Assembly: GCA_003693705.1 (NCBI GenBank)
Contig: RBZT01000607.1
Span: forward strand, 1-64,000
DNA: 64,000 nt
Reading direction: 5' to 3'
DNA from: Polymyxa betae A26-41
Lineage: Eukaryota; Protista; Endomyxa: Phytomyxea
The notes beneath the pieces were generated by a model. That model searched no databases. It had not been told where the DNA came from and was given only the letters and a program-made list of their open reading frames with translations. Within the stretch, counting starts at the first letter, position 1; each line of letters starts with the position of its first letter. The translations under genes and the position numbers were made by a program. This document shows positions 1 through 55,424 of this stretch, in pieces.

Positions 1-736
1 TGGTTTTGCAAGCCTGGTTGTTACAGGTTGGGGATTTGCAGACTTTGCATAGTCCTTTCTGTTTACTGGACGGTGCGGCGACTGGGTATTCTCGTTTTCC
101 GATGTAGTTAAATAATAAATTATTTTATAAGCTCCTAACCCTAAAACCCTCTGTATATTGCCTCCAAGTCTGTTACTGCTCTGAGCTCAGTGCAAACTCT
201 AACAGATTTTGGCAGCAGCCTCTCTAGGAGAAAACCTGTCATACAAACTCGGGGTGAAACCTGGGAAGACACTGTTCATATGGATGCCAATACGGAGCCG
301 AAATGAGCCTAATGGGAGACAATGACTTCGCTCCTGTTTCTCTCTGAATGTAACACAAGAGACAGCAAGACTTTTTATTTCGCAAACTTAGTTAAACAAC
401 GCAGTAGCGGATTAATACATAAAAAAATGCTTCGAGAGGGAATCGTGGCAATCAAACGAGATGTCCGCAGAATTATTTGAATCAGACATGCCGAGAAACT
501 CATTTCGGGCAGAATGAGTTTTAAATAATAAAAAACGGAAAGCAAACCCTAAGACGTTGACATCTATGACCGTGAATCCACACCATCAAACACTCTGTTT
601 CAGCTCGTGTACAGTCGCAGTATTTTTCGCAGCAACTTGGTACAAAGTGCGCAGCAACGCCGTACGCACTACGCAGGTTCGTGACTCGACCGCTGACCTG
701 TGACCATTCCCTGACGCCATTCTCATTTCCACTACA

Positions 737-2296
737 ATGTACGTTCCGGTCCTGGTCCTGATGGCTGCAGCCGTACTGGGCCTGGGGCGCGCGGCCTCCT
801 CGGCCGAGCCCGAATGCGGGTTCGATCGTCTCCCGGATGAGATTCTGGCCGTGATCCTGGCCGGCCTCTCCGTCACGGACTTGGGACATCTCAGTCTGAC
901 CTGCCGCCGCCTGCTGCCTCTGGGCCGTCACCAGGTCGTACCGGCCCTGTTCGAATCGCCCCTGATCCCGGACTACAAGATCTGCGAGCTCGCCCGTATC
1001 GTTGCCGTCCAGGTGCGATACGACCGCGAGACCGTCGCGCTCGTCCAGGAACTCCGTCCGCAACAGGTCCTGGTCCTATACCAGTCGATTATGTTGAGCA
1101 AATTGAAGGACAAGGAGAAGGCCGCGCTTCTGCGCTGTATGATTCGAAGACTTGGCCTGACCTTGATGAATGATGTGGCGGTGTTTCTGGACAGGGCTTG
1201 TTTCTGCAGTCATCTTTTGCCCGGACTTCCTGTCCTGGACGTTCCTGTTCCGCGACAGGAACTTCCCGAATCCGTCCTCGATGTCGTCGAGAAGTTCATC
1301 AAACCGAGACTGTCTTGGTTACAGCGAGGGCCCATGAGCCGATTCTACCTTCGGCAGGAAGCCGCGAAAGCTCGTCGAATCGAAAATCCTCATCTCAATG
1401 ATCTCAGAAACATCATCCGGCCTCTTTATCCGTCTCTGTTCTGTCATGCGCTCGGATACAGCATTTGGGTTGCCACGGCTCTTCTGCGATCGTTTCCCCG
1501 AGAATCGCATCCGCTTTCGGAAGCGAAGAATGTTCTGGCTCTGCGCCACTACGGGATCGTGCTCCCATTCGATCGCTACCTTGAGCATGTCGAGATTCCG
1601 CCCGAGTCCGTCGCGGACATCGCCCCATTGCTGCATTTCGACATTCCGGAAGTCCTGGCTCGATTGTGCCAGCTGGTCAAGGCCCACGGTACTGGCCCGG
1701 CCCAGGCCCTGGAATGGCTCAAGGTCCCGTTCATTCAGCGACGGATTTTCTTAAAGCCGAAGCTGTTCATTCGTTCCGCCTGTGATATGTTGGAATCTCG
1801 TAACACGGAGTTCTTCGAGAGTTTGTCCAAACTGCCATTCATGCCCCGGGTCATCGATCGATCGTGTTCCTGTGACGGCAAGCACACTCTTCTGGATAAA
1901 TCTTTTTCCCTCCAGTTGTACGATATTGTTAAAATTCTGATGCAGATTCCGAATGCGTCCCTGTTCCTGAAGAATCACCTCAATGCTTCCTTGTTCGACT
2001 ATTTTTTGCGGCATACTCTTCGTTATAATTGGGTCGCGGGAACTATCGAATTCGTAAAGTGCCCTGAGTTTATGAAGCTGATGCTCTCCAACATTCCAGC
2101 ATTGAAACGATCTCTTCTGTCTCATATTGATCCGGAGTATGTGAGATCGTTCCGGGCTCTTGTTGAACATCCCATCTATTGGAATATTCCAGAATATGTT
2201 CGATCTGAACTGATTCAATATTCAAGTGATCATGATAGTGACATCTATGAGATTTTATCTTCTGCCGAACAGCCTCTCATCACAGATTCAACTTGA
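737..2296 (+). CDS. Secreted F-box protein with probable ankyrin-like repeat (candidate effector), 519 aa, intronless
   Basis: Hydrophobic N-terminus MYVPVLVLMAAAVLGLGRAASSA, then the F-box motif FDRLPDEILAVILAGLSVTDLGHLSLTCRRL. The later segment DGKHTLLDKSFSLQLYDIVKILMQIP resembles an ankyrin repeat. AATAAA lies ~20 nt after the stop. Confidence 0.8.
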   Translation: MYVPVLVLMAAAVLGLGRAASSAEPECGFDRLPDEILAVILAGLSVTDLGHLSLTCRRLLPLGRHQVVPALFESPLIPDYKICELARIVAVQVRYDRETVALVQELRPQQVLVLYQSIMLSKLKDKEKAALLRCMIRRLGLTLMNDVAVFLDRACFCSHLLPGLPVLDVPVPRQELPESVLDVVEKFIKPRLSWLQRGPMSRFYLRQEAAKARRIENPHLNDLRNIIRPLYPSLFCHALGYSIWVATALLRSFPRESHPLSEAKNVLALRHYGIVLPFDRYLEHVEIPPESVADIAPLLHFDIPEVLARLCQLVKAHGTGPAQALEWLKVPFIQRRIFLKPKLFIRSACDMLESRNTEFFESLSKLPFMPRVIDRSCSCDGKHTLLDKSFSLQLYDIVKILMQIPNASLFLKNHLNASLFDYFLRHTLRYNWVAGTIEFVKCPEFMKLMLSNIPALKRSLLSHIDPEYVRSFRALVEHPIYWNIPEYVRSELIQYSSDHDSDIYEILSSAEQPLITDST

Positions 2297-3144
2297 AGCA
2301 TGTCCAATTTTTTTGCAATAAAACCCATCATTCGTCTTAGCTCTGTGTTTGCGCACTCACTTTTTCTGTAGAATCCTTCTAGATATTTCGTGGACCCAAA
2401 GATTCATTTCGCAGATTTTCACTGCAATCCGGAGATGCTGTGAATCGGTTTACCGCATCTCACGACTTCGATCCCAACAATGTTGATGTCGTCATTGTGA
2501 ACTAGGCCTGATAGGCGCCTATAACAAGTTTGTGAAGCGCGGAATCTTCATTCGGTTCCAGGACAGCGATAGTTTCGATATCGAACAGCATGGAATACAC
2601 CAGATGGATATCTGGATTTCCGATCAGCAGGTCATTGATCATATTGTATTCCATCATGCCGACAGCGATTCTGAGGAACGATCGCGAATCGGTCTTTCCT
2701 GTGAAATCTACATTAGAGCTCCATTATACTCCTAGAACTTGTTATGAATAAACCCGACCGATAGTTGCGTCTGGCACGAGTTTGTTCGATCACTTCTATA
2801 AGAAGTCAATACAAATAGTCACTCTGCTTTCTGCCCATATACCCCAAAATGCATTATTAAATCGGACATGATCCGGTCATTCTCGATCTAGAATATTAGG
2901 AATGAAGTGCCCATGCTACCGTAGTATAAGAATGTTGGCATAATGGAAGATGATACTTGTACACATTGCAGCAATGAATCCGAAAAAGTCGTCATTGGCA
3001 AGACCGATGACGAAGTGGGTATCGCTGCCCACGAAGTTCGTCGCCGAAGAGCGACGACCGCCCAGGAAGATCGCGAAAGACACCAGCAGCGCGAGTCAGC
3101 GCGATAAGAAACTGAAGAATCTCATCCGAGATATTGAGAATCAA

Positions 3145-3244
3145 GCACCACAGAGAACTCGGTAACGTCAGTACTGTCAGGATGGCTGCGCCGCACCACA
3201 GAGAACTCGGTAACGTCAGTACTCTCAGGATGGCTGCGCCGCAC
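3145..3244. repeat. 48-bp tandem duplication (2 copies)
   Basis: GCACCACAGAGAACTCGGTAACGTCAGTACT(G/C)TCAGGATGGCTGCGCC at 3145 and 3193, one mismatch. Confidence 0.95.
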
Positions 3245-4240
3245 TTGACTCGTTTTACCATTTCGATGTTCTCATAATCTGGTGTTTATGGGGATTCCAT
3301 TCGCTGCCTATAGGTCAGCTTTCACTTCCGACGTGGATACGCTCTTTGAAGCACTTTTTATTTACTGTTTCAATTATCATTGAAAGTCTGCAGATAGCTT
3401 CGCCTTGTTGAAAAAATCATTTATCTTTAGATGTTCGTTTCTCGGTTTTGCACCAATTAACAGAGGCTTACATCCGGTTTTCCCTTTGTAAGAAACTCAG
3501 CTCCCTTTTCCTTGACAAAACGCAGCCATTATTGTGGTTTATCCATTTGTTTGTGACACGTTTATAGCTGTCATCTGAATTCTATGCTCCGGGATACGTT
3601 GATGCCAGTGGAAATGAGGGAATGCAGCCGTCCCGGATCGTACAAAGGTATCTACGTGGACGATTCGCTCTTGATCTCATCGTGACTCTCTCGAATTTGC
3701 GATTTGTATAACGGAAACTGATAATGAGGCAGAGGGCAAAAAGTTGACCAACCCGTTAAACAAAGAAATGCAATGAGCCAATGAGCACAGGGTAAACGTT
3801 TAACAGCATTCCAAATCATTTCGATAATAGGCTTTCGCTTCCGAGGTATCATTGCTCCAGTTGCTCTTTGATGGAATGCTGGATCCGAGCACGGCTCGCT
3901 GGGGCAGACCGGGCCACACTACCCGTCTGCTATTCCATATCGTTGGCAGAAATCCCTTCTCAGAACGAGCATGACGGAGGCACGAGAACAATTTTCCGAA
4001 CATCAGGCAGAAATTGTTTATTGCAATGTCACCCCCTTGTCAACTCTGGTATTCCGTAAGTGAGGTCTCATCCAAAGACGCATCGACAGATTCCAGATGC
4101 TCTGAAGTCCACTCCAGGAATTTCCGGACATTGTTTGAGCTTTGGTTTTTACTGAATAGAGACTTCATCTTCTCTAAATAAAAGTTTGGTTTCAAAGAGC
4201 CTTGTAAGCTGCTCATCTCATGCGAAGAATCATCGCTATC

Positions 4241-5913
4241 CTAATGGTGCTCTGCAATTCCGTATTCAGAGATACAAAACGAACAAGAACCAATTCGCAG
4301 ACCTTTGATAGCACCCAGATCGGGTGATGGCATAAAAACCGACAGAGCGGAGCCGGAGGTCCAGCACGCCAGCGCCTGAACAACGCTGGGCGCGGTGCGG
4401 AACAACGCCCGGGCAATGCTACAGACTGCGAGAGAAGCGAGTTTGTTGCCGGACTCGACAATCGCGTGCGGGTAGCCGCAATGAATAAACCGCAGGACGG
4501 CCAGATGACTAGTGTTGCGAACGCCAAATTTCTCCGGTTGGTCTCCGATGACTGTTCCGAAGTAGGGCCGCATCTTGAAAGTAATTTTCGTCGAATCCGT
4601 GTGAGGGAAATTGGTTTCATCATAATAATCGACCAAGATCTGGAACAATTCTTCGAGCGATAAGGAGCTAGTACGAACTAAATGAGCAATGAAATTCGCT
4701 GCCAAATTGGTGCGAAGAGCAGCATGTGGCTCATAGGAAAGTGGCAGCAGACAAACGATAATGTATGGATCATCGACATCGTTCTTTGATTGTTCGTTGA
4801 GCTCAGATATGTATCTGTCACAAGAAGTAAGGCCGAATTGAGCAAAGGCCGCAATGAAAATAAAAACTTCATGAAGATAATGATGCTGATCTGAAAAACT
4901 TGGATCCATGAAAAGAATTTTAAAACGAAAGACAGTTTCATAGAAATTGTAAAATTATCGAACTAAATAGCAGAGCGGACGGACTGTTGGAGAATGATAC
5001 GCCACATGTGTAGAATTTCAGTAGGACGGGCACCGGGAACATTACGTAGAACATCTTCATCCAAGGGCTCGGTATAGAATACCACACACGCAGTCCGAGT
5101 TAAAACAGAATCGAATTTGGGCCCGTACGGACATGATCGCCTTTGAAAATACATCAGCCTGTTGATCACAAGTAGCGTTAGCAAAGATTCCGATGAACGT
5201 TGACAATAGCAGACCATCTCGGGAATACATATTCATAGAGAAATGTGGATTATGAATGACCATCAATATTGCAAAGAAGGATAGAATCCACAGAGGTCCA
5301 GATATTGGAATCATCCCTACACAAAAACTGTGTGAATCATTAGAAGTTATAAGAAAGACGAAGTTCACCTTTGTCCGTGAGAAAACAACTCGAGAGCAAA
5401 CTCAGGCGGGAATGTGATATTTTTGATGCTGTACCATGATCAATATCAGGAATAGCTGGCACAAATAGCTGTAAAACTTTTTGGAAGAAATTTTGGAAAA
5501 CATTTTTACAAAAGAGAATCGGAAAATCATCCCTACTTGAGAAGATTATCGATAAGTTTGCACTCTTCGTCACTATCAGCATTGGTAAACGAAGCTGGAG
5601 GAATCTCTCGCAGTGTCTTGGAGAAGTCCCAATCAACTGGTTGTGGTCCCAGGGCGGCCTCCGACAATGCCAGAAGTAACGAATCACCGTCATGCCACGT
5701 TATAGTCGATGAAGCCGGCAGGCTCTGTATCCTATCCCGCAGCGATTCCCATTGTACATTAGAAGATGGTAGCTCCGTATAATGGCGGACATCCCTTATC
5801 AGCTTCACAATATGACCATGCTGATCGGGTTCCGGATTCACAGGTGATGCGGTAAGGCCACTGCGCAGAAGCAGAGTCAGCACGACCCACGCCAGTTGTG
5901 AGGACCAGATCAT
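4241..5913 (-). pseudogene. Probable disrupted secreted-protein gene
   Basis: Signal-peptide-like start MIWSSQLAWVVLTLLLRSGLTA-SP at 5913, then abutting minus-strand ORF pieces (5533-5913, 5340-5550, 4241-4909) separated by frameshifts and stops. No recognisable domain. Confidence 0.4.
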
Positions 5914-38486: not shown

Positions 38487-41400
38487 TTAAACAGAGACAG
38501 CAGCGGCCTGAGCAAGAACCGACGAATGCGAGATCGAGACGTTGATCGAGCGGACGCCGACCGATTCCGCGATCCGTTTCGCGTCGCCGTGCAGCACGAC
38601 GCGCGGCGCGCCGGACTCCGTGGGCAGAATCTCGATCGCCGCCATCGGAGCGGCGTCACCACGATCCCAGACCTTCTCCTGCTTGCTGGCGAAATCCGAG
38701 ATCGATTTCAGCACCGCCTCTTTGGCGCACCAACGCCCGGCGAACGACACCTTCGGATCGGGACGGCTGCGGCAATACGAGATCTCATCCGGCGTGAAAT
38801 TGCGCCTGATGAACTCCGAATCTGGATCCGGGAACTCCGAAAGCCATTCGTTGTCGCAGCCGATTCCGGACTTGACGGAGCCGCCGATCAGGTCCTTGAA
38901 CATGCGATCGAGCGGCGGTTTCGCGCCCTTTCCGTACTGCGAGAAGTTCCACGTTTGCTTGGCGGCGTCGAACTTAGCGCGCGCCAGAGGATCGAGATAG
39001 ACGGCGGATTCTTGCTCGGGCGTGAACGGCGGCGAATCCTTCAATTGAACGTAGCGGCTCGATCCGATCAACGAATCGTGCAGATAGCGATAGATTTTCT
39101 GCTCACGAACGCGACGCTTCGCCACGTACGAATCGAGCTGCGACGCCTCCAACGAGGCGAACAAAAACTTGGGATGAATCACGAGACATTCGCCGCCGAC
39201 TTGACCGAATCCGAACGATTTCAACAGACCGGCGTTGAGACCATCGGTCTGAATGCTGCGAGACGGATAGAAGACGAAGTCCATTTTCGCGAGCTTCGAT
39301 TCGATGTTATCGGCGTTGCGATTGCCGGGGATGATGCCGGTGTTCAGGACGTTCAGCATGCCGTTCAGCATCCAAGCGGCGGCGGCGCCTTTCGGATGTC
39401 CGGTCAGATACTTCTGGAAGATGGACGGAATCAGATTGCCGGCGCTGCGTCCGAGATGCGCCAGCTGCTTGTCGACGACCTCGGATTCGTTGACGTCGTT
39501 GGCTTTGGTTCCGGTGCCGTGGAACGACGCCACGTCGATATCGTCGACCGTGAGACCGTAAACCGCGAGCGCGGCGCGCAGCGGCGAGATCGTCGGATCG
39601 TCCTTCGCGAAATCGTGCGACCACAACGCCAACGTCGCTTTGTACTCGCGTTCGGATTGTTGCTGAATGAACGTCGCGCCTTCGTCGATGAACAGTTGTC
39701 GCTCCGAAGCCGGCAACGTCTCGGCTTCGCTCAGCAACGCTTCCATCTCGGCATCAGCGCGCTCCTTGATCTGCCGACGGCTTAACTTCAGCCGATCGGA
39801 GCGGAACTTGAAGTCAAGAAGGCGCGAACGCCGGGACGATTTTGATTCGCGCGCGGTCGTCAGAACGCCTTGGCCGGGAGCGGGAACCGAACGCCCGACT
39901 TTGTCCATGGCCGTGGCCGTATGAGCGATGATTCCGTAGATCGGGACGCCCATCTCAATGGCGATCTTCGCCGTCATCAAGACATGAACGCCGGCGCCAT
40001 GCGACTCCATGAATCCGCCGCGCGACGACGTCGCCGGGCGCGACATCTCACGAGGCTCGCGACCTTGAGCGAGTTCGTGAACGCTGTTCGAAGTGGCGCC
40101 GATGTTGCCGAACTCCTGGCTGCTTTCTTCGGTGAAGTCGTCGTAGCCGCCGCAGATCACGATCGAGGCTTTCCCGCTCAGCAGGGTATCGACGCCGATC
40201 TCGACCGATTGCACGGCCGTGGCGCAGGCGCCGACCGGGCTCTTGATAGGACCGGCGCTGGACAGCAGCAGCAGATTGACCCAGGCGGGCATCGTGTTAA
40301 TGAAGCTCTCTTGCAGGACGTCTTTCTGCACCTGCTTGTCCAGGAAACGTTCGCGGAAGATGCCGCGAAGGGCGTGCATGCCGCCGATGCCGCCGCCGCA
40401 CGTGTTCCCGACGCTGCTGACGTGAACGTATTCGTAGAATTCGTACGGATCGGTGATACCCGACGAGACGAGGGCGTCGACGGTCGAGACGAGCACGTAG
40501 AGCGTGACCGGATCGACCTGATCGACGATGTCTTTCGGGACGCCGTAACGCTCGGCGTCCCAGCCGGTGGGAATCTGTCCGGCGACGAGACGATCGAAAC
40601 GCAGCGCCTTCGGGATGTACAAGGTCGCGCCCTTCTTCAGACGAACGTTGAACTGCGACGATCCTTCGACCGGGAAGATGTCGACGAAGGCGCCGTGCTG
40701 CAATCGGAAGCTGTCGGCTTCGGCGCGCGAGCATTCGAACGCGGGCATCTCGCTGTTGATCACGACCTCTTGCAGGAGCAGCTTCTTGTCCGGATCGCAA
40801 CCGTTGAACAGCTGCGGCTCGATCAGACGGATTCCGGTGTGCTTCAGGATGCGCTCTTCATATAGGCGTTTGATATCGTATTCGCGGAGCGGCTCGTCCG
40901 AGGCCGAATCGACCCAGCCCGAGAACGACGTCCCGTCCTTGTTACGACGATTGGCGACGTACTTGATGTAGCCCATGATCCAGGCCAGCTCGATGCAGCC
41001 TTCCAGCGAGAACTCGCCGAACGCTTCCATCTCCCAGCGAGTGCGGGCGTTGCCGTACGGACCGACCTCGCCGAACCCGGTCACGACGATGACACGATCC
41101 AGGTCCAGCATTCCCTTCATGTAATCGATCGATTTCAGATCCGTGGGCAGATCGGGGAGATCGAAGGCGAGATTCGAGCGCGGTTGGATTGATGGGGATT
41201 TGGCGGCGACGAAATCAGGGCCTTGGACGAGTTTGGCTTCGGCGCGATCTTCGTGAAGAACGGCTTTACGAACGGAGGCGGATTGCATAAACGACGAACG
41301 AATCTCCATGGAAAGCGTCTTGAGATTGGCGATCGATTTCATGCCGCCGCTGAGATCGGCGAACAGCGGCGCCTGCTGCGATAAACGCACCATCAACGGA

Positions 41401-44400
41401 TGCATGAGCGCGATCAGGTTGAACGTCATCTCGTTGGTGCTGAACGTGCGACAGCCGCGAGCCTCGATTCCTTCCGCGACGAGATTGTTGTCGCTCATGA
41501 GACGGGTTCCGCGAGTCCATCCGATCACGGCGCCAACAACCGTGAGGAAATCGCTCCAGTCTTCCGACTCCCATCGATTCAGCAACGACTCCAGACCGAT
41601 CTTCGATTCCGAATAGAGACCATCGTTGCCGAAGACGCCGTGATTCGGAGACAACGGCAGAATGACCTGCGCAGGGCGCGTGCGCTGATTCAGCGATTGC
41701 TTCTTGGCGGCGACGTTCCCGAGAAGACGGTAGAGATTCGTCAACATGATCCGATGAGCGAGTTCCGATCGCGAATCGATGTTGAGCAGCGAACGGCCGT
41801 TCTCGGAGATCGCCGCGAATGGAATAATGTAGTCGAGGTCGACGCCGAGACCCTTCTTCGACGAATCGTAAATGAAGTCGATGAGGGCGTCCACATCCTG
41901 CTTCGAGCCTTGATTGAACTGCAATACGGTGAGACTCGATCCCGTCGAGCCATGATTCTCGTAAATCTCGCGGAAGTAATCGTGAACGGGTTTAAACAAA
42001 CGAGAGGTGGTGGCGATAACCTGAGAGGAAAGGGTTAGGGTTTAGGGTTGGCAGAGAGCGATCATGGTCACCTTGGCACCAGCAGCGAGAAGAGCTTTGA
42101 CGAGATCGCCGCCGATCGATCCAGCGCCGCATCCCGTAACGAGAACGTTCTTGCCATGGAAAGAGACGCCGCCGACCATGGACTCGAGAACATCGAAGAA
42201 CGTGTTGGTCATGGATTGGTCGAAGGTCCATTGGCTCGGATCACGCTGATCGCGAGATGAAAGAAAGATTAAAGGTTGCTTGGCGCCGTCGCTGGAAAGC
42301 TTCATCTCGCGAACGTAATCTGCGAACGAGTTAACGCCAGGGCGATGGACTTCGCTGTAGACGGCGTCGCCGCTCTCAGCAATTGACATTCGCGGACCCG
42401 TCGGAATAGAAACTGAAAGAAAAAGTTAAAAACGGCAGCCGGGGTTAGGGTTTAGGGTTTACCTTCGCGATACAGAGGCAGGGCGCCCTGAGCGTCTTCG
42501 ACGAGTTTAATGAGCGTTTGTGCGAAGGTTTTCGCCTGTTCGTTTCCGCGAGCAGGATCGAGAACGCGACACATCAGATAGCGAAGATGCTGTACTAAGC
42601 GCCCGTTGGATCGATTGATCAATTGAAGGCATTCAGCAGAGACATCGCCATTGATGCGGCCGGAAACGAGGTCAAACAGGACGCGAAAGGCTTCTTGATG
42701 CGACCAGTTCCAGTAGCTGTCGTATTGACGGATCTTCAACGGATCGAACGACGGTCGAATGCCTTCAGCGTAATCAGAGCCGTGCTCGGCGATCCAGAGA
42801 TCGAGCTCGGTGACGGCCTGGCGATGAGCAGCTTCCTCTTTGTCGAGATCATCGTAGCCTTCGCGTAGATTCAAGCCGAGATAACGAGCGTGCGATTCGA
42901 GCTGATCGCGGATTTGAGCGTCCATTCGCAGCTGCATCTGGACGAGCTCGGCGCTGCTGACGGCCGCGACTTGAGCGTTTTGCGATTCCGACGACGACTG
43001 CAATGAGACGACGACGCCCGTCATCTTGCAGTAGGATTCGACAACCGATGAGATCCAGAGCTGGACGTCGCTTTCGGAGGATAAACGGCTGCTGGGCTCC
43101 ATGGTGACTGCATGAAGCAGAACGCCATCGGATCGCTGAGGACCCAGACCGTACGATTTCGAGAGCAGCGATTTGACGGCGGACAGCCCGAAACCGGCGG
43201 GAAACTTGTTGCTGAGCAGCTTGTTCACCAATCCGGTCGTGTAGCTGCCGAGAGCGCCGTTATGAACCGGAGCCAGAAGAGCGGCTAATGCATCCAGAGG
43301 GAGTTCCTCGGATTTGTCGGGAACCAGATCGCTGCCGAACTCTTTCGCCAGATCTCCGAGCATCTCGTTCTGCATGGTGGATTTGCCGCCGACAACGTCC
43401 TTGATCGATTGATTTAGAGCAACGTTGGGAGCAGAGCGTTTCAGCTTATGAGCGATGATGGAGCGAAGAACTTCCGATGCGGAAATGGGAGCATCACTGA
43501 AAGCAAACAATGTCAGAAACAGGTTCGAAAGTAGGAGCAAACCAGACCGTTTCCTTAGGGTTCTAAACCCTAACCCCCCATGAACAAATAAAACAGAAAG
43601 AAACAGGATGAACAAGTAAAACCGATAAAAACACGATAAAAAGATAAAACACGATGAAAATATAAAAATAATCAAGATGAAGATAAATGGCCAAATCTTA
43701 CGTAATGGGCGCTACTGACGAAGCAGCGGGAGCACTAACTTGGACAGGAGCAGCGACAGGAACAGATGGCGCGGAAGCAGCAGCAGGCGCTGGATTAGCT
43801 TCCTGAGCGGGAGCAGCAGGCGCCTCTGTTTCCACATTCTCGAAATAGATCGCATCGCGATCGCGAACGTAACACAGATTCGAACGACGAATGCTATTAG
43901 CGACATCGACTCTTCCGAACTTCGCCTTCAGCGTCTTGTCGGCCATACCGCTGAGAACCGGTCCAGGACCGATCTCGATCACGCGCTCAGCTCGGCACGT
44001 TGTGTACAGCTGAACCTGTGTTTGAATCCATAAAACCGGAGACGCGAACTGATACGCCAACAGTTCGATCAACAGAATGCGACAGAGTTGCTGCTGCTCC
44101 GAAGGCGTCGAGTACGACTCGTCCGTCCAGGCTTCGAGAATCGTCTGTAAAGTTTCGCTGTTGGTCGCCTTGTAGACGCGCTCGATATAATCGGGCGTGA
44201 GATCGAACGGCTCGGCGATTACGTTGGGAATGTAGCGATGACGAAGGAGGCTGACATCGATGAGCGATTCTTTGATACGCGAGGAGAGATAATGACGGAA
44301 GGCAGGGACGCCGGATTTCAGGAAATTCGAATGGAAAGGGACGTCGATTCCAGCGAGGGGAATCGAGGCGAATCCACGCTGCAAAGCGACGAACGACGTG

Positions 44401-47400
44401 CCGGGTTCGCAACGAGATTTGACGCCCTGGACGATTTGCGCAACGCGAGGAGAAACGCGACGAGCGATTTCGGTCGGCGAAAGATCCAAAAGCAATTTCA
44501 GATCGTATTTGCCCGAGCTGAACAAGTTCAGAATCTCCTTGAGCGTCTCGAGACTGATCAGGTCGCCGGCGACGACGTATTGTTGACCTTCGACGTTGTA
44601 GTTGACGATCTCCAGCAATCCCTTCGATTCGATGCCGATGAAGCTGACGACCATCTGGAGCATTCGCTCATTGAACAGCTTCGGATTGACGCGCATCGGG
44701 TTGACCGCCACCATTCCATAGTTGGAGCGTCCGTTCGAATCGCGAGGAACAGCCGATTGCATGCTGAGGCCACGATAGAATACGACGTCCACCAACGTCT
44801 CGATCGAGAGGACATCCGCGACCGATGTCAAAGCGCTGTATTCACCGAGAGAGTGACCAGCGAAGGCGCAATCAGCAGGAATGAGTCCCTTCGATTTCAT
44901 GTCCTCGAACGCAGCCTTCTCCATCAATGTTAACGCCGGCTGTGTGAACTGCGTCGACGACAGCAGCCCATCGGGCGACACGAACGTGTAGCTTTCGGTG
45001 TGTTCGGTGATCTCCGGGAACAGCGGCTTCTTCACGGACGCGCCATCGGGCAGGACGACATCGACGGACAGCGCCTGATAGTTGCTGCGGATCTTCGCGC
45101 CGCGACGATTGCCGAAATACACGGTGCGCTGCGTCGGGTTGTTCCGAACGATATCGAGAATAGAGACGCCGTACAGGTCCATGAAATGTTTGTCCGCACG
45201 GTCCCAGATCGAGCGGGCGATGGGCGACGAGTCGTACAGGTCCATGCCCATGCCTTTCGACTGCGATCCTTGACCGGTGAACACGAACGCCGTCGGCGGT
45301 TGATCGACCTCGGCGGTGCCTTCCAGTACGACCGAGCCGTCCTCTTTAACGGTGACGATTTTGATCAGCTTCTTGCCATCTTCCATGCCGATGTGCGTCA
45401 ATCGGGTTTCGAGCTTCTCGTCCGGCAGAAGCATGCTGACGAAATTGACGGAATAGGCGCGGACGGCGTCGGGTTTGTTGTCGGCAGCGAACATCTCCAC
45501 CCATTTCTTCGTGGCGGCGCTCGTCCACATTCCATGCGTGATGGTGCCGGGAAGTTCAGCGAGCGCAGCGACGTAGGCATTGGTGTGGATGGGATTGACG
45601 TCGCCGGAGACACGAGCGTAGGCCGAATTGCACGAGGGCGACGAGAACGCCGACGAGAATGCCGCAGCCGCCGGAATCACGGAATATCCGCCCGAAGCGA
45701 ACAAATGCTTCGGATCGAGATTCGATCCGTGACGCGCCAGGTACTGCACGACCGGGTCGCCGTAGCTGATACCGCTCTTCTCGTAGGAAACGTGGCCGAT
45801 CGCGACCGATTCTGTGCCGGAGATGAGCATGGAGACGGTCCCGTTGGTGATCACTTTGCTATAGGCGGATTGATCGGCGTATTCGTAATACGAATCCAGG
45901 CGGAAGACGAGCGTGGATCCGACACCGATTGCGGGAGCTCCGGGCGTTGCGACGAACCACGGACGCGATTCGAGAACGGAAACGTCGTCCTGAGTCTTCA
46001 GCTCGACATTGACGGGATTGTGGGCGATTCTCTCGAACGTGTTCTGGAAGTCGGAGAAGGAGCCGCGATAACAGAATCGGGTGACGACTTCAATGACAGG
46101 TTTGGAATTGCAGAAGACGGTGCCCTTCACTTGCAGAATCTTTCCAGATTTCGTGTTGACGACCGACTCGATCTGCGAAGAGGCGTGGACAACGTCGCCT
46201 TCGCGTAATCCGTTCACAGCGGGATCCAGCATGCGGAAGCTGTTCGAAAGGTGAACGAGCTTGAGAATGTCGGCGTCGATGAACTCGGCGAAAAGCGCGC
46301 AGATGATGCTCTTCCAGCCGGCGACGATCGCGTAATCCATCGGAGCGGACAGCTGGTCTTGGGCAACATACGACTCGGCCTGATTTCCGACACAGCGGCA
46401 GAATGACAAAATGTCGCCGCGAGTGATCGTGTGCTCAGCAGAAACGAATTTCGAGTCGCGGTCGTACATTGGAATGGGCAATTCTCCAACCCAAAGGCGG
46501 TAGTAAAACTCCTTAATGCGATCATTGCGACCCTGCAAACAACTTAGAAAACAAACCTCTGCATGATAAACAAACAAACCTCCATAATTTCATGAATCGG
46601 CGCGTAAGCTTGGCCAGGAACATATTCGAACTTGAGAACGAGCTCGGCCGATCCACGATCTCCGCTTTCGAAAAACGAGACGTCAATCAAAGGAGACGAA
46701 AAGGTGGCTCGGACGAAAACGGCATCGCCTTCGCGAATTTCGATACCGATTGGGTTGGAATCGTCACCAAATTCAACCTTGATCACCTGGCCACGACGAG
46801 GCCCGAAAACACGTTGAAACGGATTCGGAGAAGAGCGTTTTCCTTGGAAGATCGATTTGGAAGTGAGCAGCGAACGCAGCCAGCTCGCAGAAGGTCCGCT
46901 GACGAAGTCGAGCCATTCGTCGGGTTCAGGAAGACGGGCATCGCTTTGCGAAAGATAATAGGTGGTCGAACGCTGGTTGGACGAGAGAGCAACGCCTTGA
47001 GGAACGCAGCGCCGTTTCGAGTTTCCAGAATCGCCGAGAAACTCAACAACCGGGACCATGTTGAGATCGTTGTTGTATTGCCGCTCGAGAAGAGCTGCAA
47101 TATGACCTTCAACAATCGAGTCCATGATGACGCCGACAGGCTCGTCAACGACACGAGAATGTTTGACGGCAACAGGACCTTGGAGAATGCAGACTCGTTG
47201 CGGATCGTGATCGACAACAGCATCGAGGTCTTCAGCTTGCCAAAGACTATCCTTCTTGAACCAGGTCTCGAAGCTTTGGTCCAAAACCGGGATGAAGGGG
47301 ACGGGCTTTTGGCCGCGCCGCGAACAGATCGTGAAGAAGTAACCAACATCCTCGCTGGTCAGCAGCTGTTTCGTCGCCTGAGGGAACTTCTTGGCGAAAA

Positions 47401-50400
47401 GCGACACGATCGAATCGGGCTGAAGCAGGTCGTCGGCGGATTGCAACAGGCTCTGATCAGATGCGTCCAGAAAGCGCTCCTGAATGCGGATTAAGAAGTC
47501 GAAGACGATGGTGCGGTAGCTCGAATGGATCCATCCATGATTGTTGTACCGGACGAACATCAGCTCGATCATGCGATTGACGACCTCCAGATAGGTCATG
47601 TCTTGAACATCAGCGACGGAGCCGTCCGAGCGACGACCGAACCAGGGCTTCTGGAAATCAGCATTAAGGCGCTTGATGATATAATCCTTCTTGTTGACGA
47701 GAGCAGCTGCGCGTTTCTCAGGCGTCAAACTGAAGATCGTATCGTCGAACTCTTTCCAGAGCAAAACGCCGCGGGTCGCCACCTTGTGAATTGGCTCTCC
47801 CAGCTCGCTCTTAACCGTGATCACGCCACCGGTGACTTTCTCGTAACTTTCGACCCATTTGGATTCGTCTTCGATACCGCTGGCGGCGACGATACAGTCC
47901 TTGGCGCCTTTGCTGGTTTTGGCTTCGCGAGCGACCATCAGCCGTGATCCCATTAGAAGGCCATCCACAGGCATGGAAGGATATCCGAAAGGAACGCTCC
48001 ATTCTCCGGTAAGATAACGAAGCGAGCCATCGGCGTCACCGATTCCGCTGCCGAACACGAGAATCAGGTTGGACTGGCGACGAATGCTCGAATACGTCTC
48101 GAGGAGAGGAAGATGGGCGTCTTCAAAGCCATGATGACCTCCAGCACGTCCTCCGGTCCATTGAAGAATGACGGGGAAATCGGGACAAGCGCTCGCTATG
48201 CGAACGACTTGCTGGATGGCATCGATGCTTCCGGGCTTGAAAGCGATATGTTTCAAGCCGGCGTCTTTCATAGCGTTGACGATCTCGATGGCTTTCTCGT
48301 GCGAAGGAACACCCGCAGCCACGCAAATGCCTTCGATTGGAACACCTTCTTTCTTCATACGAAGAGCGAGAGGGAACTGGAATCCCCATTGCGCTTGGTT
48401 CAGGTAGAGGATGTTCAATGTGATCGACTCTCCGGCGGGAACTTGTCGGAGGATGTCATCAATGGTACGACGAAGAGATCCTTCATTGTAGTGTCCACCA
48501 CCGGCGAGTTCAACGTGATAGCCGGCGTTCACCGTAGCAGCAACGAATTGAGAGTTGACAGTCGTTGGGGTCATGCCAGCCACCATCAACGGCGGTTTCC
48601 CAACAACGCGACTGAAACCGGTGTCAAGGCGAACTTTCCCATCGCTAAAAACAAAAAATCAATAAATATCATTCGGTGGTTTGCGATGACGTACTGTTTT
48701 GTTCGGACCAGCTTGGGACGATATTCGTTCTTCCAGTTAACGGAGCGGATCGGGGTGGAGGCATCGTGCAGAAACTGGGTCTTGGTCATGAACGAATTGT
48801 TTGTGGAGTCCAACGATCCCATTAGGACGATTTGGACGCCGGTGCCATCCAGATTACGATGCGTTAGAGCGCCGATGCCGGTTGAACCACCAGGCCCGAA
48901 ATCAAGGATATGAGTAGCGCCGGTAGATGATGAGGCTTTCTCCCAGAGGACAGGTTTGCAGCAGATTTGTTCGGCGAGTGAAAGGGAGAGATTCTCACTG
49001 AAGCGAAGATCAACGCCAGAATCCGTGGAATAGACCGGAACAGAAAGCTTTTCAGCTGGAAAACTGAGGTCGAAGCGCTCGATATCATCAGCGATGAGGT
49101 CGAGAGCGTCTTTCAGAAAGTCGGTGTGAAACGGAACCGAAATCGAAAGGAATCTGGTCGAAAGCTTCAAGAGGCGTTTGTTGAAGGGAACGCGGCTCTC
49201 ATCTTGTCCAGGTTTCGCTTCCATCTTGAGGAGCGCCACGTTCAAGCCGTGCAAACTCTGCGGATGCCCAGCGCAAACGAACGCTCGTGGACCGTTGAGA
49301 AGCGAGACGATTATACGGCGGTTGCCAGGGAGAAGGTTGTTGTGCTCGTTAACCAGCTTGAGGAGAACGTCGTAACTCAGGTTGGTTACCGACAACATCG
49401 GAGTCGGAGCGCCATCATCGCTATCGAAAGATTCCTTGAGAATGTTGGGACTGAGCGTTGTCACAGGATAGGTTTGCTGGGAGCGGCAACCGATCCAGAA
49501 CAGCAGCAACAGAGCACGTCGAGAGTTTTCGAAAAACTCTTCCTCGGTGTCGGAAGCAGAAATAGCGACCGCAGCAACAATTCCTTGAGAATGACCGGCG
49601 GCGCCTGAAAAACATTTGAGTGAAATTAAATGAAAAAAAAATGCGAAAATACCGATGAAATAGCTCTTCAACTGCTTGGGGGAAATGTCCAAGATTTTGA
49701 ACAGCACGTAATAGTTGAGGAGCTGCGACAGGCCGATCAGGGGCAGGCTGACTGGAGCGGCGATAAGATAATCCGATGAGGGACGATGTTCAGGGGAATG
49801 AATCCATGTTAGAACATCGAGCCCATCAGGATAGAGCTCCATCGCGAGAGGGTGCGAAGCTTGCGAACGCAATGCATTGGCCATCTTCTCAACGTATTGG
49901 TCAACAAATACGGGGTATGTCTTGACGATATCGAGGAGCTCGTCAAAATAGTAATCGGCACCTTGGCCTCCAAAAATGGCGAGCAAGGATGCTTTGCCAT
50001 CCTTGGAAGCTTGGAACAATCCCGGTTTGGGTGCAGCCAAAACGTCGACGGTTGGCGAACCAGGATCTGGCGACTTAACGTTTAATGGAAGCTGTCCGAG
50101 CTGTCGAAGGCACCAACTAGATTTGTAGAAGACACCAATGACGAATTGCCGAAGCGGAAGAGGAAGGTTTTGGCTCGCAGCATGGACATTGTTGTTACGT
50201 TGCAGGAATTGCAAGCAATATTCTTGCAGCAACGAGGTCAGGATGCGCTTAGATGTTGCCAAGGGAATATCGATCTTTGCGTGAAGGATCTGAAAGACGA
50301 CGAATTGCAGGAAGCATGTAGCGAGACGAACCCGACGTTCTTGCTCGGTAGTGGCGATAACACCATTGAAATGCTGAACGACATCTTCATGCATGAAACG

Positions 50401-50649
50401 ATCCCGAAACAGATCGGCAGCGTGAAAATCTTGGGTTATGATCGGAAAGCTGACATACACTGGTGGCTCCATCGTCGTCTCGTCAATCGACAGCAGTCGG
50501 TTCGAAATGGCACTGGGCGCGCCAAGCACAGACTTCGGAGAAGTATCGGCATCAACGAACTTATCGAGCGTCAGCGGGTGATGCACGCCTGCCATGGATG
50601 CAGGGCCGTTGCCCAGCGTGGCGAGGCCGAATTCCGTTCCAAACGTCAT
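38487..50649 (-). CDS. FAS: Single-chain fungal-type fatty acid synthase (FAS1+FAS2 fused: AT-ER-DH-MPT-ACP-KR-KS-PPT), about 3903 aa
   Basis: Motifs GHSQG (AT), GGRAGGHH (ER), DVNPIH/HGMW (DH), GHSLGEY (MPT), GGKSTMQNE (ACP), GCGAGSIG and YSESK (KR), GACATA, HGTGT and GHPKGA (KS), GIGCDNE...AGRWCAKEA (PPT). Introns 49605-49652, 48645-48694, 46533-46579, 43497-43701, 42413-42462 and 42021-42071 give an 11712-nt in-frame CDS. Confidence 0.97.
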
Positions 50650-54065: not shown

Positions 54066-55424
54066 CTATCGTCCCATCTTGATATCGAAATCGCCATTCT
54101 TCATGGTGCTCGTTTTCGTCTTACGAAGTTCAACAGCATGTTCAAGGGCTTTCTGCTCTTCGCGTAATTCCATGAAATTTGCCCACGACGGCGGATTGGT
54201 CTTCAGAAACCGCTGCAGTGAGTTCACCTCCATCAGCCTAACAAGCTGATCGGCGGCATCATCGAACATATCGTCCTCGACACGGAATCCGTCACGGGTT
54301 TTGAAAATCACATCGCGGAACTTCAACAATGTTGAGCTCGGTAGGTTGACCTCCAGAGGCGCCGTCGTAGAGAGAAACTTATCGAATATACTCCATGCGT
54401 GATCACTGGTGGGGTCACCCCGAAACCCCATCACTTCTTTCCAGAACAGAAGATTCTCTACAGAAAACTCTTTCTCCAGATAGGCCTCAAACGCAGCAAA
54501 CCCATTCTCTGTCAGCAGGAATAGTTCGAAATCGGACAGCGTCGTATTCGCTTGCGAGAAAGCGCTTCTCTCAGCCACAGATATCATCCTCGTTGACTTC
54601 ATCGCCGTCAGCCACGGTATCACAAATGCAATAGCGATCACGTAATCAGCTCCAATCAAGTTGATAAAATCTTGGATACCGAGCGGTGACGCCTGCATCA
54701 ACTTATTCGATGCGACCAGATAGAACGTGGTCGTACAGGTCGTGAACAATCCGATCCGTTTCAGCATGGCCTTGGTCCCAAACGCATCCTGGACGATTCG
54801 CAGTCGAAAACTCGTTACAACCAGGCAGCCGATCGTAACGAGATTCCGTCCCAAAAGCAAAGGCGTAAAATAAACGTACGGCGACGGTGACAGCCCTGAA
54901 GCGACGTCGTCCAGCGGAATGGAATAGTAGTCCATGGGCTGCGCGTAACCGATCAGCACGCCCATCCAGACGGCCGTGTTGGCCCAGACCCAGCCGAATG
55001 CGAACCGATTGCTTAATAGGAACGATGACCATTTGATAGAGCGCATGAATGTATCAACATCAGCTGGTGTTGATGTACTAGATGATGATAGAGCTTGATA
55101 GATGGCCATCTGCTCTTTAGTCTTGTTATAGGCAATATATTGTGATAGAGCGAATACGAAGAACGATTCATAGGCGACCAGGAGGATGATTCCGCTGACG
55201 ATCATATTCCACCAGAGGCCGAGATAATGTCCGATTCCATTTCGAAGAATCTGGTGCCATAAGAAGGCCACGCAGACCGTCAGACATTGCGTGAACAACG
55301 CTGGGCGGCGTGATCGCAGAGGGTCGTACTGTCGCTTCTGCCAGTACAGCCATGGTAGTACCAGAGTCGGTAAATGAAGGACACCGAGGACAAGCCAGAT
55401 GGCGACCTTGATGGAGTTCGCCAT
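54066..55424 (-). CDS. 7TM-RGS protein (seven-transmembrane regulator of G-protein signalling)
   Basis: Seven hydrophobic segments with PLRSRRP after TM1 and DAFG after TM5, then the RGS box FEAYLEKEFSVENLLFWKEV...IFDKFL...APLEVNL...MFD...LMEVNSLQRF. Confidence 0.92.
   Translation of the reverse strand: MANSIKVAIWLVLGVLHLPTLVLPWLYWQKRQYDPLRSRRPALFTQCLTVCVAFLWHQILRNGIGHYLGLWWNMIVSGIILLVAYESFFVFALSQYIAYNKTKEQMAIYQALSSSSTSTPADVDTFMRSIKWSSFLLSNRFAFGWVWANTAVWMGVLIGYAQPMDYYSIPLDDVASGLSPSPYVYFTPLLLGRNLVTIGCLVVTSFRLRIVQDAFGTKAMLKRIGLFTTCTTTFYLVASNKLMQASPLGIQDFINLIGADYVIAIAFVIPWLTAMKSTRMISVAERSAFSQANTTLSDFELFLLTENGFAAFEAYLEKEFSVENLLFWKEVMGFRGDPTSDHAWSIFDKFLSTTAPLEVNLPSSTLLKFRDVIFKTRDGFRVEDDMFDDAADQLVRLMEVNSLQRFLKTNPPSWANFMELREEQKALEHAVELRKTKTSTMKNGDFDIKMGR

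Follow-up and report, generated by a model that had tools for sequence, protein, structure and literature searches.

A Polymyxa betae gene family encoding candidate secreted F-box-ankyrin effectors

The gene described here lies at positions 737-2296 (plus strand) of a 64,000-nucleotide stretch of DNA from Polymyxa betae A26-41 (contig RBZT01000607.1 of assembly GCA_003693705.1, positions 1 to 64,000 of the forward strand), which was analyzed as a whole and is called the window below. It is a single intronless open reading frame (ORF) coding for 519 amino acids. An earlier note on this DNA, made by a model from the letters, had proposed an effector that recruits host SCF (SKP1-cullin-F-box) ligases, and we consider the chances about even that the gene indeed encodes a secreted F-box-ankyrin effector that redirects host ubiquitin ligases. 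Judged from sequence, the leader, the F-box, the helical linker and the degenerate ankyrin half of the protein are parts of one Polymyxa-restricted family, much of which is pseudogenised.

Results

The F-box gene is transcribed and intronless

The 519-codon frame at 737-2296 is intact and free of interruptions. Its start codon at 737 is the first ATG after an in-frame stop located 11 codons upstream and has an A at position -3. RNA-derived contigs from three public runs of three studies (X1, X5 and X12) were aligned to positions 1-5000 of the window. All three carry the neighbouring minus-strand genes in spliced form, with joints at 2697/2758, 2795/2843, 2915/2963 and 4251/4303, each of which skips 47-60 nucleotides with CT..AC ends (GT..AG on the minus strand). 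These runs are therefore RNA, which the records do not state. The contigs are unstranded and give no expression levels, and the samples have no life-stage label.

Coverage of the F-box gene is colinear from 401 (X1), 379 (X5) and 549 (X12) through the stop codon to 2699, and the whole ORF is covered in the three studies. No splice joint or loose 5′ end was found across 379/401..2699 in the contigs of the three runs, and their coverage of positions 168-334 is zero. The gene is transcribed and intronless. An upstream exon that would remove the signal peptide, which the earlier note had named as a possible refutation, was looked for and is absent, since the RNA contigs run colinearly from approximately nucleotide 380 to 2699 without a joint. 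A fourth run, the metatranscriptome X23, which is recorded as RNA, yielded 0 raw reads; P. betae may be absent from that sample.

The apparent 5′ leader of the transcript (379..736, plus strand) is defined by the contigs of X5 (from 379) and X1 (from 401), which are colinear into the ORF. It contains five upstream ATGs with short upstream ORFs, the longest of which (566-703) is in frame and closed by a stop at 704-706. An efficiently translated mRNA would not usually have such a leader, which could be regulatory; because the contigs are unstranded, part of 379-736 could also belong to another, overlapping transcript. CCCTAAA-like words at 135-150 were considered as a telomere and rejected, as they amount to only 1.5 copies and transcripts continue past the contig start.

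Run X12 holds a diverged version of the F-box gene that is approximately 96-99% identical. It has 21 differences and a frame-shifting 5-nucleotide insertion behind 1099 in the part corresponding to 920-1453, and nine differences and a 3-nucleotide insertion behind 1642 in the part corresponding to 1494-2264, which is on the next contig. The listed changes comprise 7 synonymous and 18 non-synonymous ones. Either a strain allele that has become a pseudogene or a paralogue missing from the assembly would account for this variant.

A signal-peptide-like leader is conserved in the family

The N-terminal 23 residues (737..805) resemble a signal peptide. Residues 5-17 form an uncharged run of 13 with a Kyte-Doolittle mean of 2.6, too short for a membrane span, and are followed by small residues (G-x-A-A-S-S-A) and then acidic ones. 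AlphaFold2 (AF2) models the leader as a detached helix with a low predicted local distance difference test score (pLDDT), and the F-box begins 5-6 residues past the likely cleavage region.

The same leader-then-F-box layout is present in approximately 40 of the 48 readable N-termini of paralogues. The initial methionine is often followed by a basic residue (mostly K, R or H) ahead of a core of 11-20 uncharged residues, whose best 10-residue Kyte-Doolittle mean is 2.7-3.7; the core is followed by small residues, in many cases G-A-A-S, and by an acidic spacer, 5-30 residues long, that leads to the F-box. This layout is kept in members that are only 17-27% identical to the window protein (those on contigs C868, C17, C205, C879, C955, C415 and C125). 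Leader sequences thus diverge without losing their character, which is what one would expect of a signal peptide. Basic charges before and acidic charges after the core, together with the short cores, suggest that the C-terminal side is translocated, which would fit a cleaved signal peptide and not an anchor that leaves the C-terminus in the cytosol. From the hydrophobicity heuristics, the conservation in the family and the published secretome discussed below we infer that the leader is a signal peptide.

Five open members lack the leader and start directly at the F-box (C53, C97, C730, C288a at 18705-19781, and C645). In a maximum likelihood tree of 21 open members, three leader-less ones form a clade and a fourth is located nearby. 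A single gain or loss of the leader may be compatible with this tree, which is not rootable, so that the direction is left unassigned; the leader-less members may represent a cytosolic ancestor of the secreted clade or a reversion from it. Four longer members (C879, C955, C415 and C125, corresponding to L041, L045, L046 and L054; 617-744 amino acids) carry extra ankyrin-like repeats after the common body, and in two of them the region between leader and F-box contains a basic K-R-P-R or K-R-A stretch resembling a nuclear localisation signal.

The leader is followed by an F-box

The F-box is encoded at 821..955 (plus strand); the Pfam core covers residues 29-59 and the third helix extends to approximately residue 73. 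Two Pfam models match residues 29-59 above their curated cut-offs: PF12937 (F-box-like) with 27.6 bits (cut-off 24.3) and PF00646 (F-box) with 25.0 bits (cut-off 20.5). Residues 25-63 align without gaps with the F-box of human Skp2 in the Skp1-Skp2 crystal structure (PDB 1fs1_A). Common to both are the opening L-P-D-E-[IL]-L, the spacing of the leucines and, in helix 3, C-[KR]-R. When the family profile was compared with the PDB, the F-box protein 9kkx_C was retrieved with an E-value of 0.002 and Skp2 with 0.007. AF2 places three helices at residues 34-42, 46-55 and 57-73 with a pLDDT of 79-94.

The F-box-like model is matched in 6 of 11 aligned family members, and the consensus L-P-D-x-L-L ... 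C-R-x-L is held in the leader-bearing members across deep divergence. Transfer of the F-box from host to parasite was considered and rejected: the parasite itself has family members without a leader, and all members group together. What the earlier note had seen in this half of the protein, a signal-like N-terminus followed within approximately six residues by a textbook F-box, and a long helical body behind it, agrees with these data and with the all-alpha model described below.

A helical body leads into a degenerate ankyrin segment

The full AF2 model, which was computed with the family alignment, is all alpha (mean pLDDT 76, predicted template modelling score 0.72) with two disordered loops. 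The F-box is followed by a helical linker (residues 74-221, 956..1399) that is delineated by the AF2 models and by conserved family motifs in the alignments; its loops at residues 148-172 and 208-220 are of low confidence. The next part (residues 222-373, 1400..1855; pLDDT 85-94) is a family-specific central helical region, which is the best-conserved part of the protein apart from the F-box. Its invariant or nearly invariant columns are L260, L267, A268, L269, G273, F276, P297, L299, P331 and P367. Profile relatives of this region are only contaminant contigs labelled ‘Beta vulgaris’ and unnamed metagenome fragments.

Residues ~374-433 (1856..2035) form a degenerate ankyrin-repeat segment, which is followed by C-terminal helices seen in the AF2 model (residues 434-519, with the stop codon 2036..2296). 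An ankyrin-like segment had been proposed before, and this part of the proposal holds for the family better than for the single protein. Pfam finds nothing in the 519-amino-acid protein alone besides the F-box models, and no Ank match appears even at E-values up to 10. The family profile, compared with 1.84 billion representative sequences, retrieves hundreds of multi-repeat ankyrin proteins at profile positions 345-430, with E-values down to 1e-27; profile positions 368-426 correspond to residues ~374-433 of the window protein, and Pfam confirmed ankyrin repeats in the checked examples. In the PDB the profile finds a designed ankyrin protein with an E-value of 5.6e-6. Ank_2 is matched in two of the 11 aligned members, and the relative P0004 reaches 38.9 bits against an Ank_2 cut-off of 27.3.

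An exhaustive structure comparison with VIA-align placed ankyrin domains on top, with 200-250 residues aligned over residues 240-518 and Z-scores of 7-8.6, which alone are not decisive for helical repeats (below the VIA-align caution level). The top matches include p100/NF-kB2, a Leishmania ANK protein, TRPV3, ASB7, vaccinia K1, Notch, IkB-zeta, MIB1 and FEM1B. The model suggests a wider ankyrin-like solenoid over residues 240-518. A Foldseek search of the full AF2 model against the PDB gave only non-specific helical-repeat matches with E-values of 0.016 or higher. By profile and paralogue comparisons the ankyrin-like segment is real at the level of the family and degenerate in the copy at 737-2296. 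A separate, ankyrin-like interaction domain is thus present C-terminal to the F-box, as in SCF substrate receptors.

The gene belongs to a large family with many pseudogenes

The P. betae draft RBZT01 consists of 1,001 contigs with 27,085,946 bp and a GC content of 45.1%, sequenced with Illumina at 225x coverage (PMC6328671). The gene at 737-2296 had been taken as a single gene; it is intact, but it is one member of a largely pseudogenised family. A search of the draft with the 519-amino-acid protein alone gave 73 matches, and a profile of 11 members gave at least 92 (145 candidates, 87 scored). The family comprises roughly 60 copies on at least 50 contigs, a lower bound that comes from a fragmented draft. 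Tandem clusters are found on C222, C35, C309, C725, C602, C288, C214, C645 and C41, and many copies are located on small contigs or within a few kilobases of contig ends. The two closest copies (C309 and C387) are cut by contig ends after 101 codons; since copies are cut in this way, the true copy number is probably higher. A second member was not found within the 64-kb window; a further one lies just beyond it on the same contig (C591) at 67334-67633.

Among the fetched loci, approximately 22 copies have one uninterrupted reading frame across most of the profile; of approximately 55 copies that could be assessed, at least 32 are interrupted, by 34 frameshift and 16 in-frame-stop junctions. 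Introns were considered as the cause of the frame changes and rejected, as almost all junctions lack the 47-60 nucleotides of extra DNA of real introns. Sequencing errors are an unlikely cause because of the Illumina coverage of 225x. The nearest subfamily has only three open copies (the gene at 737-2296, C309 and C932). In the first 101 codons of the three closest copies, dS is approximately 0.08-0.12 and dN/dS is 0.9-1.5, not significantly different from 1; these values and the X12 figures fit either diversifying or relaxed selection. Purifying selection acts on at least part of the family, because more than 20 full-length open copies survive branch lengths of approximately one substitution per site.

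Relatives are found only in Polymyxa-derived sequence

Neither a word-indexed homologue search nor an exhaustive profile search retrieved relatives outside Polymyxa-derived sequence, and the latter gave no named relative from Plasmodiophora brassicae or Spongospora subterranea. Two metagenome matches that were followed up are uninformative or plain ankyrin proteins. The sole close relative in the word-indexed search is a 100%-identical fragment of 311 amino acids annotated as ‘Beta vulgaris’ on a 1.1-kb contig.

The Polymyxa family also includes several GenBank proteins that carry the annotation ‘Beta vulgaris’ and lie on contigs of 0.6-1.3 kb (KMS85982.1, KMS64572.1, KMS64600.1, KMS93801.1, KMS94377.1, KMS65249.1 and BVRB_019220; P0001-P0004, P0032, P0034 and P0036). 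The window protein is matched at 100% identity by P0001, and the end of contig C649 by P0036. From these identities, P. betae contamination of the sugar-beet reference assembly is evident. Nothing in the P. betae draft is close to P0004 (best identity 29%), which may stem from genome sequence missing from the assembly or from a different organism.

A published secretome contains a protein of the same layout

To compile the published secretome of P. betae, SignalP 6 was followed by DeepTMHMM on mature sequences (PMC12503489). One entry, poly_jg9577.t1 (407 amino acids), has an F-box at mature residues 9-37 and belongs to sequence cluster 27, which consists of ten P. betae-only secretome proteins (PMC12503489). 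The spacing of its F-box is the same as in the protein encoded at 737-2296. Its AF2 pLDDT of 57.5 is below the cut-off of 65 used in that study, and the protein is listed and never discussed (PMC12503489). According to that study, P. betae lacks a large effector cluster and has just five ankyrin effectors (PMC12503489). The family was probably missed because its AlphaFold models scored under this pLDDT limit and because Pfam does not recognise ankyrin repeats as degenerate as these.

The same secretome lists poly_jg1088.t1, a UBC-like (ubiquitin-conjugating enzyme/RWD-like) protein, as a second predicted secreted component of the ubiquitin system (PMC12503489). In the text of the P. brassicae genome paper the term F-box does not occur, and a P. 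brassicae effector study uses it only in passing, in an explanation of SCF.

Other genes in the window

Two convergent genes on the minus strand (2297-3700 and 3850-4814) are expressed and spliced, with introns at 2698-2757, 2796-2842, 2916-2962 and 4252-4302 (47-60 nucleotides). The ORF at 4241-4909 is part of a spliced transcript in all three RNA runs and has no Pfam match. Five long serial ORFs at 38487-50649 (minus strand) have a GC content of 51-59%, compared with approximately 45% around them, and together encode all the domains of a fungal-type type I fatty acid synthase (FAS). The beta-subunit domains come first (FAS_N, SAT, Fas1 helical, meander, DH, MaoC and acyl transferase), followed by those of the alpha-subunit: ACP (acyl carrier protein), FAS_I_H, the N- and C-terminal parts of ketoacyl synthase, and phosphopantetheinyl transferase. 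From this order the region looks like one fused FAS1-FAS2 gene of approximately 12 kb. P. brassicae was reported to be without a fatty acid synthase, and two candidates were found among Spongospora transcripts (PMC4471660). At 54069-55424 (minus strand) a 452-amino-acid ORF contains an RGS (regulator of G-protein signalling) domain.

Discussion

Proposed function

Secretion, cleavage, entry into the host cytosol and SKP1 binding are predicted here from sequence features. Zoospores of P. betae inject their contents into root cells, in which multinucleate plasmodia develop (PMC5772912), and plasmodiophorid plasmodia in general grow within host cells (PMC5772912, PMC4815078). Since the plasmodia are intracellular, ordinary secretion could reach host SKP1. 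In the proposed mechanism, the leader would act as a cleavable Sec signal peptide by which the protein enters the parasite endoplasmic reticulum (ER), and the protein would then exit across the plasmodial membrane. As the plasmodium is inside the root cell, the mature protein would meet the host cytoplasm with no dedicated translocation motif. There the F-box would dock on the conserved plant SKP1-CUL1 core and the ankyrin-like domain would supply the substrate, so that host proteins would be ubiquitinated to the benefit of the parasite; alternatively, the protein might titrate host SKP1. Expansion and decay of the family would reflect an arms race with the host.

Several observations weigh against this proposal. 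The signal peptide of the 519-amino-acid protein is a heuristic call, and the secretome entry poly_jg9577.t1 could not be mapped to the gene at 737-2296 itself. In the F-box the usual tryptophan of helix 3 is a leucine, no more than 31 of the 43-47 positions of the Pfam models are covered, and neither Foldseek nor VIA-align retrieved an F-box structure for an AF2 model of residues 24-150 (pLDDT 88); they gave only generic ARM/HEAT-like helical repeats with Z-scores of at most 7.7. Five upstream ATGs in an apparent 5′ leader of approximately 340 nucleotides would depress translation. Broken copies make up more than half of the family, and dN/dS is approximately 1, which also fits a decaying family. 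Some Polymyxa stages have been reported in the electron microscopy literature to be walled off from the host cytoplasm. Finally, P. betae has its own SKP1 at two loci (C882 and C675), which the F-box could serve as part of the parasite SCF.

This last point leads to an explanation that we regard as unlikely, namely that the protein is an SCF adaptor inside the parasite. The hydrophobic N-terminus would tether it or route it to the ER, Golgi or plasma membrane, or would be an uncleaved anchor, and the F-box would work with the SKP1-cullin core of P. betae in the turnover of parasite proteins; the expansion would then resemble that of the endogenous F-box families of nematodes and plants. In addition to its own SKP1, P. 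betae has approximately 30 other Pfam-detectable F-box loci, the leader-less members show that a cytosolic version is viable, and the combination of F-box and ankyrin is an ordinary eukaryotic architecture, with fungal clusters among the ESM Atlas neighbours. However, the charge pattern around the hydrophobic core would put the bulk of the protein in the ER lumen, away from SKP1, and the comparable published protein survived the DeepTMHMM filtering. The restriction to Polymyxa, the clustering at contig ends and the heavy pseudogenisation are likewise more typical of host-interaction genes.

It is quite unlikely, in our view, that the protein is secreted without recruiting an SCF ligase, as an ankyrin-like scaffold that binds or sequesters host proteins and whose F-box is vestigial or binds a partner other than SKP1. 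In the sister genera, effectors are dominated by secreted ankyrin proteins, of which PbANK1 binds the host kinase MPK3 without E3 ubiquitin ligase activity (PMC12503489). The F-box match is partial, and several paralogues have lost an F-box detectable by Pfam, which is present in only 6 of the 11 aligned members. Yet the F-box core residues I40, L52 and C56 are among the better conserved columns of the leader-bearing members at an overall identity of 20-25%, which argues for continued selection on the F-box motif. Very unlikely is a repeat family without current function that arose by segmental duplication in unstable repeat-rich regions, with the copy at 737-2296 transcribed at background level: the interrupted copies, the many copies at contig ends, the dN/dS of the closest copies and the changes and 5-nucleotide insertion of the X12 variant fit it, but more than 20 full-length open copies could not have survived approximately one substitution per site unless purifying selection had acted, conservation extends over the leader, the F-box and the central motifs, and RNA contigs cover the gene fully in three studies with word depths similar to those of the spliced neighbours.

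Comparison with known F-box and ankyrin effectors

The supply of an F-box adaptor by a pathogen is an established strategy in bacteria, viruses and one insect, of which the Polymyxa family, with a function predicted from sequence, would be a variant. Poxvirus ankyrin/PRANC host-range proteins combine ankyrin repeats with an F-box-like SKP1-binding motif and act in the host cytoplasm. They differ in having the ankyrin repeats first and a truncated F-box last, and they have no signal peptide, as they are expressed directly in the host cytosol. Poxvirus-type structural neighbours of the Polymyxa model are vaccinia K1 and the cluster ‘Ankyrin repeat protein OPG189’.

Legionella pneumophila AnkB and Orientia tsutsugamushi Ank5 likewise combine an F-box for host SKP1 with ankyrin repeats for the substrate, and both come from intracellular parasites (PMC2790608, PMC11401901). 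Both are bacterial proteins delivered by type IV or type I secretion, whereas the Polymyxa proteins have a predicted signal peptide of the Sec type. AnkB carries a C-terminal CaaX farnesylation box (PMC2916131). The C-terminus of the Polymyxa protein has no CaaX box, and the protein is therefore AnkB-like in domain logic only and not a member. In the Orientia Ank proteins the F-box is C-terminal; in Polymyxa it is N-terminal, and a long family-specific helical region precedes the ankyrin part. Among plant pathogens, Ralstonia GALA/RipG and Agrobacterium VirF are F-box mimics that bind Arabidopsis SKP1-like proteins; they occur as paralogous families whose members are partly redundant and whose repeat domain is under positive selection (PMC4617103, PMC13243912). 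In contrast to the Polymyxa proteins they are secreted by type III or type IV systems, have leucine-rich repeats (LRR) or no repeat domain, and belong to small families (approximately seven members).

The earlier note had remarked that such effectors are much less characterised in eukaryotic parasites, which understates the case of SSGP-71 from the Hessian fly, Mayetiola destructor. These proteins have a secretion signal, an F-box and LRRs, and members bind host Skp (PMC4617103, citing Zhao et al. 2015). SSGP-71 is like the Polymyxa family in coming from a eukaryotic plant parasite, in the order of its parts, with a secretion signal at the N-terminus, then an F-box, then C-terminal repeats that presumably select the target, and in being very large, fast-evolving and lineage-specific. 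It is set apart by its LRR repeats, by salivary injection from outside the cell and by demonstrated Skp binding, whereas the Polymyxa proteins are ankyrin-like, are known from sequence and would be secreted by a parasite that is already intracellular. Beyond the F-box the two families have no sequence relationship.

The plasmodiophorid ankyrin (ANK) effectors include PbANK1 and 17 ANK proteins with a SKP1/BTB/POZ domain (PMC12503489). They come from the same order and combine a signal peptide with ankyrin repeats, form the largest secretome clusters and have a link to ubiquitination through their fused domains (PMC12503489). Their ankyrin repeats are canonical and they have no F-box, whereas the Polymyxa family has degenerate repeats, an N-terminal F-box, a central region of its own and no detectable homologue in the sister genera. 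Altogether, the domain logic of the Polymyxa proteins is closest to that of AnkB and Ank5, and the delivery signal and family dynamics are closest to those of SSGP-71; the family is homologous to none of these systems.

Implications for Polymyxa biology

With more doubt than confidence, we put forward a broader proposal: P. betae may deploy one of the largest families of secreted E3 adaptors in a protist, with approximately 60 signal-peptide-F-box-ankyrin genes under birth-and-death turnover, whose products would be released into the root-cell cytoplasm and would each reprogram host SCF towards different plant targets. If true, this would revise the published picture of P. betae as an organism without large effector clusters and with five ankyrin effectors, and the family would correspond, in Polymyxa, to the expanded ankyrin effectors of Plasmodiophora and Spongospora. 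F-box mimicry, known from bacteria, viruses and one insect, would extend to Rhizaria, and no translocation device would be needed since the parasite is already intracellular. Plasmodiophorids are major crop parasites that are hard to work with, and a mechanism has been proposed for very few of their effectors. The family would offer a concrete route by which P. betae could manipulate sugar-beet cells, namely F-box-dependent SKP1 binding and then ankyrin-like substrate capture. Intact and broken copies and strain variants are candidate markers of host-range or pathotype differences. If the proposal is true, the family could influence host compatibility and perhaps the cell state in which the parasite can acquire and transmit beet necrotic yellow vein virus.

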